64,000 bases of DNA from sequence record MZ475891.1; one strand, 5' to 3'. Under the pieces are notes generated by a model. That model was not told where the DNA came from. It made no database searches and saw nothing but the letters and a program-made list of their open reading frames with translations. This document shows positions 39,696 through 43,838 of the stretch, in pieces. The position numbers were made by a program, and so were the translations under genes. Numbering within the stretch: position 1 is the stretch's first letter; the number at the start of each line of letters is the position of its first letter.

Positions 39696-39739
39696 TGGAC
39701 AAAATAGAGGTAGCTAGAAAAAGCTGCCCCTGATATACT
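39696..39739 (+). promoter_or_regulatory. phage promoter, upstream-box class
   Basis: TGGACAAAAT at 39696; TGA-TATACT with the -10 at 39734 (38 nt offset). Confidence 0.8.
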
Positions 39740-39767
39740 AAAAGCGTAGCTTGTGCTGCGCTTTTTT
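39740..39767 (+). terminator. terminator-like hairpin directly after the promoter
   Basis: AAAGCGTAGC-TTGT-GCTGCGCTTT followed by TTT. Confidence 0.5.
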
Positions 39768-40443: not shown

Positions 40444-40881
40444 ATGAAATTTGATCAAGCCCCAACGAAAGCACAGCTCGTACTGCTGGCACTCGCTCTC
40501 GAATCCGTTCTCCTCTCTATGGAGAAAACGTTTATCAACCGTAACCTGCTGGAGCAGTTACTTGCGAAGTACGGCATCTCGTTTAACGACCTGAAAGAGT
40601 TGCGCGAGTACGGTGAAAAGCATTCCGCCATCGGCACCAGCGTTGCTCAAGTTATGGAGATAGCTGCATTGAATGTGGCTCATCTGAAAACAGAGCCGAA
40701 GCCTGAATACAGTCAAGACGACCTTGATCTAATTCGCGTAGAATACGAGCCAATCGATACGTCTGTCCTGCGTCAGGGCGCTGTGAATGATGGTGTTATC
40801 ACAGTGCAGCAAGCAGCCACTTTTGAGCGTGATCAGATACTGACTGCTATTCTTGAGTACCGACTGCGCTCAGAAGCATAA
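40444..40881 (+). CDS. hypothetical protein (145 aa)
   Basis: GAGG RBS. Confidence 0.7.
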   Translation: MKFDQAPTKAQLVLLALALESVLLSMEKTFINRNLLEQLLAKYGISFNDLKELREYGEKHSAIGTSVAQVMEIAALNVAHLKTEPKPEYSQDDLDLIRVEYEPIDTSVLRQGAVNDGVITVQQAATFERDQILTAILEYRLRSEA

Positions 40882-40884
40882 ATC

Positions 40885-40928
40885 TGGACAAAATCGTGGT
40901 TGTAGCAAAAACCGTCCTATGTTATAAT
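40885..40928 (+). promoter_or_regulatory. phage promoter, upstream-box class
   Basis: TGGACAAAAT at 40885; CCTATGT-TATAAT with the -10 at 40923 (38 nt offset). Confidence 0.8.
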
Positions 40929-40985
40929 AGAGATGTAGCGTAGACGTGAGGTATGCGCTATAAATTGAATGACGCGTTTTTGCTT

Positions 40986-41078
40986 GACTGTAAGGTAGCG
41001 GTATCTTACAGTCCTTTTTCAAGTGGCTTCGAAGTTTGAGGCTTCTTGCGAAAGGGTTCGATACCCTTTAAGCGCTTT
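40986..41078 (+). ncRNA. structured leader RNA (copy 1) with a tRNA T-loop-like hairpin
   Basis: 12-bp hairpin GACTGTAAGGTA/TATCTTACAGTC, then CTTTTT, a AAGTG...CGCTT stem and AAAGGG-TTCGATA-CCCTTT. Confidence 0.4.
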
Positions 41079-41136
41079 CGGATTTACGCGGTTTTCACCG
41101 ACTGTGCTTTCATATTAAATCGCAAAGGAAATTGTT

Positions 41137-41958
41137 ATGCCAGAAGCACGCAAACCTCGCCCAGCTGATCGTTTCGCTAAAGCCCGTGCAGAGAAAAACT
41201 CACCGGAGCGTCAAGATGCGGCAGCCCAGCGCACGTATAAAGACACTCCGCCTAAATCTGTTCAGGTGAAACTTGATGCTGTGGCAGCTTCTAAGAAGAA
41301 AGTTTCACGCGGCCCCAAGGCATCTCGTCCGCGTCAGTCGCCTGTTGTTGACGCAGCACCAAAGCCTCGCATTCGTGATGAGGAACGTGTGTACAATCTC
41401 GTACACATGATTCTCTCTGCGTGGAAAGCCGATGCAGAAAACGCGGCGGTAAGTGTGGGAATCATTAAAGTGTCTCGCCGTAAGATCGAGGGTGCGTTAC
41501 GCGATCTCAAGAATACGCGCTTCACTAAAATCCCAGGCTTAATCAATGACGTGCTTGTCTACAATGAACTGGTAGCTGAGTTCGGACAGTGGGTGTACGT
41601 CGAGCACGACAGTCCTGATTGGATTTTTGTGCGCCTGCCTGAAAACAGCACGCCTGTGATTCGCGCTGACATTAGTTACGCCAAGACGGGTGAAACTTCC
41701 ACGTCTGTTTCGACTTCTAGTGAAGTTCTGCTGAAAGATCTTAGCGAAGACGAAGAAGATGAGATCCCCGATAATGTCGAGTACGACGATGCGGACGAGA
41801 CTGACGAAGACGAAGCTGAGCCGTATGACTACAGCGCTTGGTCGCTGAGTGACCTGCAGGCTTATGCAAAGCGTTATGACTTCCTGCAGCCCGACACTGA
41901 GGGGTTCGATGATCGCGAGAAGTTGATAGCAGCCATCGAGCTGGGGGAACAGCACTAA
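41137..41958 (+). CDS. hypothetical protein: basic N-terminus, acidic linker, C-terminal HeH-like motif (273 aa)
   Basis: AAGGA RBS; SAWSLSDLQAYAKRY...DREKLIAAIE. Confidence 0.8.
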   Translation: MPEARKPRPADRFAKARAEKNSPERQDAAAQRTYKDTPPKSVQVKLDAVAASKKKVSRGPKASRPRQSPVVDAAPKPRIRDEERVYNLVHMILSAWKADAENAAVSVGIIKVSRRKIEGALRDLKNTRFTKIPGLINDVLVYNELVAEFGQWVYVEHDSPDWIFVRLPENSTPVIRADISYAKTGETSTSVSTSSEVLLKDLSEDEEDEIPDNVEYDDADETDEDEAEPYDYSAWSLSDLQAYAKRYDFLQPDTEGFDDREKLIAAIELGEQH

Positions 41959-41967
41959 GCACAAATA

Positions 41968-42012
41968 TGGACAAAATAGTGGTAGTATCTAAAGCATGAC
42001 CTGTGCTACACT
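41968..42012 (+). promoter_or_regulatory. phage promoter, upstream-box class
   Basis: TGGACAAAAT at 41968; CCTGTGC-TACACT with the -10 at 42007 (39 nt offset). Confidence 0.75.
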
Positions 42013-42015
42013 ATA

Positions 42016-42135
42016 GATCGAATGCCTTGTAGTTTTTTGACTGTGAGTTACTTTCCGGCTCACAGTCCTTTTTAAAGTGCTCTCACAAGAACGCTTTAAA
42101 AAGCACAGACTGCCTGCGCTTTTGATAGACAGCAT
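42016..42135 (+). ncRNA. putative ~120-nt small RNA (copy 2 of the structured element)
   Basis: ORF-free interval between two promoters; hairpins GACTGTGAG/CTCACAGTC (42039-42067) and CTTTTTAAAGTG/CGCTTTAAAAAG (42068-42103). Confidence 0.45.
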
Positions 42136-42140
42136 AAATC

Positions 42141-42184
42141 TGGACAAAATCATGGTTGTATCAGAATGCTGCCTGTCATACACT
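42141..42184 (+). promoter_or_regulatory. phage promoter, upstream-box class
   Basis: TGGACAAAAT at 42141; CCTGTCA-TACACT with the -10 at 42179 (38 nt offset); TTGTAT as -35. Confidence 0.75.
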
Positions 42185-42226
42185 TTAATGAGTCGAGCAA
42201 TAGTGCTCGCAACAAACTAAATCCCA

Positions 42227-42240
42227 ATACTGAGGAGTAT
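42227..42240 (+). promoter_or_regulatory. SD-in-tetraloop RBS hairpin
   Basis: ATACT-GAGG-AGTAT before the ATG at 42246. Confidence 0.6.
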
Positions 42241-42245
42241 TACAC

Positions 42246-43838
<1,593 letters not shown>

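Follow-up and report, generated by a model that had tools for sequence, protein, structure and literature searches.

A structured RNA cassette occurs twice on the plus strand within the final 64 kb of the genome of the Erwinia jumbo phage pEa_SNUABM_13 (MZ475891.1; genome 264,714 base pairs (bp)), a stretch of 64,000 nucleotides (nt) referred to here as the window, whose position 1 is position 200,715 of the record. The first copy forms the central part of the ~200-nt leader that separates a predicted promoter, P1, from gene 41137, and the second lies in an interval without an annotated gene (41960-42135). We find that the copy 1 leader is a well-supported RNA motif of four hairpins that is absent from Rfam. 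As to function, the explanation that we prefer, and to which we give about an even chance, is that both copies are paralogous leader/attenuator cassettes situated immediately downstream of promoters. Phages of this group are components of fire-blight biocontrol cocktails (PMC9686651). The region 40850-42250 matches this record at 100% identity and eight other isolates (with it, the pEa_SNUABM_13 group) at 96-99%, and Alexandravirus, Rivsvirus and Yoloswagvirus phages as well as Dickeya phage AD1 are remoter relatives. Homologous leaders were drawn from GenBank phages, IMG/VR, two metagenome contigs and four assemblies reached via the gene 41137 protein, and the consensus fold and covariance model were built from the 18 distinct leader sequences collected up to that point.

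The duplication itself, which had been proposed in a preliminary description made from the sequence alone, is borne out. Both copies consist of a GACTGT(A/G)AG / CT(T/C)ACAGTC hairpin followed by C and T5 and then by (C/A)AAGTG, and the A-T to G-C change between them at stem pair 7 is, as that description had it, truly compensatory. Specifically, the stem of copy 1 pairs GACTGTAAG (40986-40994) with CTTACAGTC (41005-41013), can be extended to 12 bp with a GCGG loop, and is followed by C at 41014, T5 at 41015-41019 and CAAGTG; further on are an AAAGGGT-TCGAT-ACCCTTT hairpin (41051-41069) and AAGCGCTTT. In copy 2, GACTGTGAG (42039-42047) pairs with CTCACAGTC (42059-42067), and C, T5 (42069-42073) and AAAGTG are followed by CTTTAAAAAG at 42094-42103 and then GCGCTTTT. 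The likeness is wider than first noted, since the upstream promoters, a AATGCCTTGT motif, a third hairpin and a pairing between the U-tract and a downstream A-tract also align. The order of elements in both copies is thus a 9-12 bp hairpin (H1), C+U5, a second helix in which the U-tract pairs with the A-tract (H2), and a third hairpin.

This arrangement is specific to the two loci. The 12-mer ACAGTCCTTTTT, which spans the stem end and the U-tract, occurs exactly twice in the window, and a hairpin followed by CTTTTT[AC]AAG is found only at these two sites in the whole genome. A covariance model derived from copy 1 homologues alone recovers copy 2 with 35.8 bits (E 1.9e-6 over 311 kb), and the same model gives no further match in the genome at E < 0.7. 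The folds of both regions are also more stable than those of all 200 shuffled sequences (z -3.5 and -5.0). A genome-wide repeat or a general terminator type was considered and ruled out, since 264 kb hold only two instances of the motif and the covariance model detects no third. Among 2.9 million viral contigs the exact H2 pattern is present at 12 loci, 8 of which come from this clade. A like design was also seen behind a stop codon in an unrelated 25.6-kb viral contig (IMGVR_UViG_3300045789_000617, L020:1565-1645), where a GC hairpin is followed by CCTTTTTAAAG pairing with a downstream CTTTAAAAAG (covariance-model E 0.005).

The copy 1 leader begins with a 5'-terminal hairpin (40935-40961, the P0 hairpin) that is present in the minimum-free-energy fold, and relatives carry a hairpin of other sequence at the same terminal position (ACAGCGAGAC...TCTCTCTGT). 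The four hairpins that follow constitute the conserved motif. H1 with its U-tract (40986-41019) consists of the 9-12 bp hairpin at 40986-41013 (free energy, dG, -15.0) followed by C and U5, and in the model-fitted alignment of the 18 leaders compensatory changes are seen at 11 of the 12 pairs. H2 (41014-41054) pairs the U-tract arm CTTTTTCAAG with CTTGCGAAAG, and an inner hairpin (41025-41043) lies between the two; the H2 arms covary from A-U to C-G, with CTTTTTAAAG/CTTTAAAAAG types set against CTTTTTCAAG/CTTGCGAAAG types. H3 (41051-41069) is a 7-bp hairpin whose heptaloop, TTCGATA at 41057-41063, matches a tRNA T-loop. H4 (41070-41109) joins AAGCGC to GTGCTT around the conserved core TTTACGCGGTTT and is 100% paired in 16 sequences; a G-to-A change of the window itself is compensated there by C-to-T. 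At the end of the leader (41124-41139), the Shine-Dalgarno (SD) sequence AAAGGA (41124-41129) precedes the gene 41137 start codon, and CGCAAAGGAAAT at the SD is invariant or nearly so across all leaders.

Several measures support this structure. RNAalifold places four hairpins after the 5'-terminal one, comprising 37 pairs of which 19 show a compensatory change among the 18 sequences. In the model-fitted alignment of the same leaders, 98.8% of pair cells are paired and 20 of the 37 pairs show compensatory double changes; such an alignment leans towards its own structure, and the MAFFT-based counts agree with it. None of 500 shuffles equaled the observed values, and sliding the partners by 1-3 columns reduced pairing to 33-54%. 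In addition, the last 91 nt of the leader (H3, H4 and SD) retain 77-88% identity between genera, whereas the coding sequence of gene 41137 retains 69-74% in aligned columns and its proteins 52-58%. That the leader is more conserved than the coding sequence it precedes argues that it is under selection as RNA. Neither the window nor six relatives gave a relevant match to an Rfam 15 family, even when matches with E up to 10 were admitted, in line with the earlier view that the RNA is undescribed.

Conservation in relatives differs between the copies: the copy 1 leader is strongly conserved with covariation, and copy 2 is present only in nine near-identical genomes. Besides occurring in Alexandra-, Rivs- and Yoloswag-type phages of Erwinia and Dickeya, the leader is present in metagenomes and in one jumbo-phage contig of a Salmonella sample. 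The Salmonella contig, which is jumbo-phage-sized (266,303 bp) and belongs to the same clade, comes from an assembly of Salmonella enterica serovar Infantis (GCA_007314735.1, L044). Its leader is the same as that of the clade, with the T-loop kept and a GAG/CTC H3 stem, and its presence there indicates that the clade extends beyond Erwinia and Dickeya samples. A leader peptide or small open reading frame (ORF) was rejected as the conserved feature, as the H1 loops of relatives differ by indels of 1-2 nt that change the frame, an SD is lacking and the ATG is not conserved. The 65-amino-acid (aa) ORF annotated as Yoloswag gp311 (L015:1428-1625) lies wholly inside the conserved structured leader and is probably a spurious gene call.

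The GenBank record offers a different account of copy 1, namely a functional tRNA-Glu(UUC) gene, to which we give next to no chance. ARAGORN does draw a 95-nt tRNA-Glu cloverleaf at 40981-41075, the one annotated in the record, and both a D-like loop (AGCGGTA) and the T-arm are tRNA-like. However, the Rfam 15 tRNA model gives no match at the gathering score in the 64-kb window and none at E up to 10 in 40850-42260, while ARAGORN itself makes no call at the homologous site in 9 relatives and finds no other tRNA in the genome. The cloverleaf also requires a 6-bp anticodon stem with a C-U mismatch and a long extra arm, and across 14 relatives these are only 70% and 59% paired, respectively. Covariation is absent from the acceptor stem, in which 5 of the 14 relatives have lost pairs 1-2. 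By contrast, the five H1 pairs that compete with the cloverleaf are 100% kept, four of them with compensatory changes. Parts of the supposed cloverleaf pair elsewhere, the 3' strand of the acceptor in H4 and acceptor bases 6-7 within H1; four anticodon-stem bases belong to H1, and the 'anticodon' falls in the conserved U-tract. The annotated tRNA-Glu is very probably not a tRNA, and its tRNA likeness is that of one hairpin, H3, of a four-hairpin leader.

With respect to H3, the preliminary description had pointed out a T-arm-like hairpin and added that a full cloverleaf was missing. The hairpin is real, widely conserved and selected, but the addition does not hold as worded, since ARAGORN draws the cloverleaf discussed above. 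The sequence GGGTTCGATACCC at 41054-41066 has a UUCRANN loop, and the closing pairs covary (GGG/CCC, GAG/CTC, GGA/TCC). The T-loop is conserved in at least 20 distinct leaders, representing every lineage but one, and in the lineages that keep it the sole loop variant is G57A, still a purine. In the eight nearest relatives the T-loop has been swapped for TCAAATGTA, with a 6-bp stem and the gene retained. Relative to L002-L006, a run of 174 identical bases gives way to 11 differences in 20 nt (41056-41075), exactly where the T-loop hairpin lies and H4 begins, a patch that looks like recombination rather than point mutation. In pEa_SNUABM_30 and phB78, where the gene 41137 homologue has been lost, both T-loop and stem are decaying. 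Judged from these sequences, the role of H3 appears to be tied to the downstream gene. An 'elbow' contact between the T-loop and the H1 loop was considered and rejected, as the two loops show no co-change.

These properties raise the possibility that H3 is a mimic of the tRNA T-arm, read by a host factor such as TruB, TrmA or RNase P to fold, mark or process the leader. TruB and TrmA accept an isolated T stem-loop, and GGGUUCGAUACCC follows the T-arm rule, with the G53-C61 closing pair and U54, U55, C56, R57 and A58. The loop is kept, with covarying closing pairs, by at least 20 leaders and decays where the downstream gene is lost, both of which would be expected of such a mimic. Nonetheless, eight close relatives with an unrelated loop still keep the gene, the H1 loop is unchanged where the T-loop has changed, and no acceptor-like helix is stacked on H3, whose 3' flank pairs in H4. 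Compared with a genuine T-arm, which it resembles in loop sequence and closing pair, H3 has a stem of 7 bp rather than 5 bp and sits in an mRNA leader without an acceptor stem, and the other parts of the cloverleaf fail. We consider this mimicry very unlikely, although it could coexist with a leader/attenuator role.

Promoter-like sequences can be read upstream of both copies. P1 (40880-40928) combines an upstream box, TGGACAAAAT (40885-40894), with a -35 element TTGTAG (40900-40905), a 17-nt spacer and a TGn-extended -10 element TATAAT (40923-40928), giving a predicted start at ~40935; it aligns with 11 other promoters of the clade. P2, upstream of copy 2 (41965-42012), has the same box (41968-41977), a -35-like TAGTAT (41983-41988), an 18-nt spacer, and TGn with TACACT as its -10 element (42007-42012), with a predicted start at ~42019. 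P3 of gene 42246 (42138-42184) follows with its box at 42141-42150, TTGTAT at 42156-42161 and TACACT at 42179-42184. Exact matches to the box occur at four genome sites only (39696, 40885, 41968 and 42141), all of them promoter-like and within 2.5 kb. Signals comprising a hairpin and a U-run lie downstream of three of the four box promoters, which suggests that the four probably form a small, specially built early cluster whose output is gated by promoter-proximal terminators. The box could be an UP-element-like sequence or a site for an unidentified factor.

At a further box promoter, P0, whose -10 element is TATACT at 39734-39739, a canonical terminator (GCGTAGC-ttgt-GCTGCGC followed by T6, in the region 39734-39765) begins at the predicted +1, so that terminator and promoter overlap at 39740-39765. 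RNA arriving from upstream would contain the full 39734-39765 hairpin and RNA begun at P0 only part of it. This arrangement is also conserved in Alexandraviruses, and Yoloswag P2 has a similar hairpin+T5 within the promoter spacer (L015:2676-2697).

In terms of termination, H1 with its U5 most likely serves as an attenuator or terminator, which is the best reading of its sequence and distribution. The H1 stem is wholly different in sequence among lineages (GACTGT.., GACCGTG.., GGGCGTAC.., GCCAGG.. and GACCACATG..), and despite these differences the hairpin and the C+U4-5 that follow are retained. With 4-5 G-C pairs, the two stems have dG values of -15.0 (copy 1) and -14.9 kcal/mol (copy 2), against -14 to -17 for the genome's GC-rich hairpin+T5 sites, and both fall within the top three matches of a simple terminator scan. 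In relatives, modules of H1 and a U-tract occur right behind stop codons (Yoloswag L015:1067-1120; in the upstream intergenic region of an Alexandravirus, L007:1859-1931), three times in tandem upstream of the gene in the Yoloswag leader, and, without an H2 partner, as the final element before the next promoter (Yoloswag L015:2783-2843, S5 L013:2669-2725 and L039). The modules that lack an H2 partner retain U6 while their flanks vary. This distribution matches that of intrinsic terminators.

A number of points weigh against such a role. The U-tract comprises only five U, is set off from the stem by a single C and runs into A-rich sequence; the H1 stems are less GC-rich than the phage's usual terminators, and the -35 element of P2 is poor. 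We found no conserved antiterminator alternative to H1; a candidate pairing of an upstream TGTGCC with GGCACA, possible in some Alexandraviruses, was set aside because it cannot form in others or in the window. A terminator would moreover leave unexplained the pairing of U-tract with A-tract and the conservation of the T-loop sequence, and no RNA-seq run is listed for the phage. Nor does the predicted control of translation stand free of objections. Alternative folds predict that the SD (as CAAAGG) pairs with the 3' arm of H3 (CCUUUG) or with a 5' CCUUUGU/UUUUUG motif, and the GG of the SD is predicted to be paired in most leaders, with CCUU or UUUUG motifs as partners, but these pairings are without covariation support and similar complementarity appears in shuffles.

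If attenuation is taken as the function, the two cassettes would work as follows. A sigma-70-type promoter with the clade-specific upstream box would begin the RNA, and H1 with C+U5 would form early. At H1+U5 some polymerases would stop, 80 nt from P1 or 50 nt from P2, releasing short RNAs of ~85 nt and ~55 nt, respectively. The same signal would terminate transcripts arriving from upstream genes, and read-through would give the full leader, in which the U-tract pairs with the downstream A-tract to form H2 and the third hairpin follows. In copy 1 the RNA would continue through H3, H4 and the ribosome-binding site, giving the conserved early gene a cis-regulatory leader of 200 nt in all. Translation is probably set by this leader too, given the predicted pairing of the SD with its CCUU(U)G or UUUUG motifs. 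Copy 2 would be the same cassette minus the gene, and would either give rise to a short RNA by termination or provide gene 42246 with a second, attenuated promoter.

It is also conceivable that these elements are passive signals only, with H1+U5 ending upstream operons, promoters lying before these terminators by coincidence, copy 2 a decaying relic of the leader of a lost gene, and the whole serving as punctuation and as protection of mRNA 3' ends. The modules behind stop codons in relatives would suit that account, as would the natural orphan leader with a decaying T-loop in pEa_SNUABM_30 and phB78, the lack of copy 2 in any Alexandravirus examined, and the overlap of canonical terminator and promoter at 39740-39765. 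Yet punctuation does not account for the strong purifying selection, with covariation, on H2-H4, nor for the conservation of P2 and its start region in two genera, and a terminator 80 nt past a gene's own promoter must influence that gene. Passive signaling alone appears unlikely to us.

Turning to copy 2, the preliminary description had placed it in an ORF-free interval with its own promoter, and both statements need qualification. No gene is annotated in the interval, yet it does contain mechanical ORFs, one of 64 aa on the minus strand (41989-42183) and another of 47 aa on the plus strand (42077-42220). P2 has the architecture of its neighbors and is homologous to the Yoloswag promoter at the same position, whereas its activity is a prediction from that architecture. 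Between 41960 and 42135, P2, with its weak -35 and extended -10, is followed by a 20-nt unstructured start, by H1' with U5, by H2' and by a third hairpin, t2. H1' (42039-42073) comprises a 9-11 bp hairpin at 42039-42067, then C and U5 at 42069-42073, and a stop here would give an RNA of ~55 nt. H2' (42068-42103) is a perfect 10-bp helix of CTTTTTAAAG and CTTTAAAAAG. The third hairpin (42098-42123), which aligns with H3 of copy 1, is a weak terminator (A5, GCACAG/CTGCGC with one mismatch, T4; dG -5.5 to -8.4), and a stop at this site would produce ~105 nt.

Copy 2 is confined to nine genomes of the pEa_SNUABM_13 group, and these are so nearly identical that its own conservation carries no weight in favor of a function. 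At the corresponding position the examined Alexandraviruses and four further relatives from public assemblies have a GC hairpin only, with the leader kept. In Yoloswag the P2 homologue is followed by an H2-like and then an H1-like hairpin, in reverse order, and Rivsvirus-type phages possess a comparable gene-less unit. Copy 2 aligns with the leader model across H1, U5, H2 and the position of H3, and at several positions, including AATGCCTTGT, the loop TTTCCGG and CTTTTTAAAG, it is closer than copy 1 to the Alexandravirus leader, which suggests that it is an old paralogue. In pEa_SNUABM_30 and phB78 (L016:1340-1710 and L017:1340-1710), loss of the gene has left P1, H1, H2 and a decayed H3 adjoining the next promoter, P3. 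By comparison with these genomes, copy 2 is most likely an orphaned leader, and the two phages would show how such an element originates by gene loss.

The preliminary description had instead suggested a small RNA (sRNA), possibly a decoy or sponge for a protein that also binds the leader. In such a scheme copy 2 would be trans-acting: it would base-pair with a target or else capture a protein, for example Hfq or the product of gene 41137, to which the copy 1 leader also binds. Copy 2 is put together as enterobacterial sRNAs usually are, in that a promoter-like site precedes a 5' end of 20 single-stranded nt, and U-rich sequence and a terminator hairpin bearing a U tail are also present. It also has H1/H2 features in common with the leader, and analogous gene-less units stand at the same position in Yoloswag and Rivsvirus-type phages. 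The 5' end, however, is not conserved in those units, and the best target of copy 2, 13 complementary nt at record position 196835 that 4 near-identical genomes conserve, is within chance, as 9% of random 20-mers equal it. Likewise, kissing between UUUCC of the H1 loop and GGAAA of the SD is not above shuffles, and every Alexandravirus examined has the leader but no copy 2. Finally, the H2 arms covary inside each copy and not between copies, which argues for folding in cis rather than for pairing of one copy with the other. A trans-acting RNA is on this evidence quite unlikely, and the comparisons give no support so far to a decoy or sponge role. A more elaborate combination would make these elements a new class of phage cis-regulatory RNA, in which H3 recruits TruB, TrmA or RNase P and so chooses between a state with a long H2 and a closed SD and one with H3 formed and an open SD, while copy 2 competes in trans for an H1/H2 factor; we consider this a long shot.

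Returning to attenuation, the cassettes share with intrinsic terminators and enterobacterial 5'-leader attenuators a hairpin of dG ~-15 with a U run, a structure that is kept while the stem sequence is free, and placement behind stop codons in relatives. They differ in H1 loops of 10-56 nt in relatives, in the C spacer and five U, in having no exclusive antiterminator, and in the conservation of the U-tract as one arm of H2. The late leader of phage lambda affords a further parallel, drawn from what is known of lambda and not from a test on these sequences, in that a promoter has an intrinsic terminator ~50-200 nt downstream. There, the strong constitutive promoter pR' and the terminator tR' give a short RNA, the 194-nt '6S' RNA, unless polymerase modified in Q antitermination reads through into the genes beyond; lambda also makes the short oop RNA. 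In contrast to lambda, no Q- or N-like factor, Q-binding element (QBE) or nut site was identified here, the terminator is weaker (C+U5) and its termination a prediction, and the leader runs on into conserved hairpins and the gene's own ribosome-binding site.

The put RNAs of phage HK022 are cis-acting antiterminator hairpins immediately downstream of early promoters, and they resemble the present pair in being paired copies of a two-hairpin RNA just downstream of two such promoters. No sequence or model match links the two systems, however, and the first hairpin here bears a U-tract and looks like a terminator, not a suppressor of termination. Translational operators, such as those of T4 gene 32, ribosomal-protein operons and thrS, also have leaders more conserved than the gene, with several hairpins by the SD. 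By this analogy the leader design would suit autoregulation, with the protein binding the mRNA that encodes it, although the gene 41137 product is without a recognizable RNA-binding domain and the SD-occluding pairings are predictions only.

Gene 41137 (41137-41958, plus strand) encodes a protein of 273 aa in which the N-terminus is basic, the core conserved and the tail acidic; the resemblance of its end to HeH/Ish1 is weak, the Ish1/HeH match being sub-threshold only. Searches for it gave no PHROG match and no PDB relative, and its 57 homologues all lack protein names; an AlphaFold model is of moderate confidence (mean predicted local distance difference test, pLDDT, 67.7). The products of this gene and of gene 42246 (42246-43838) both have basic Lys/Ala-rich stretches, long acidic runs and HeH/SAP-like C-terminal ends, and the latter contains a poly-Glu stretch and belongs to a PHROGs family of unknown function.

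Taken together, these observations correct a database error, the sole annotated tRNA of a 264-kb genome being very probably no tRNA, and they identify a conserved T-loop in an mRNA leader as an unexplained and testable feature. If H1 is a working attenuator, an early gene cluster would be controlled by premature termination behind four special promoters, and an understanding of the early regulation of these biocontrol phages may be of some practical value.

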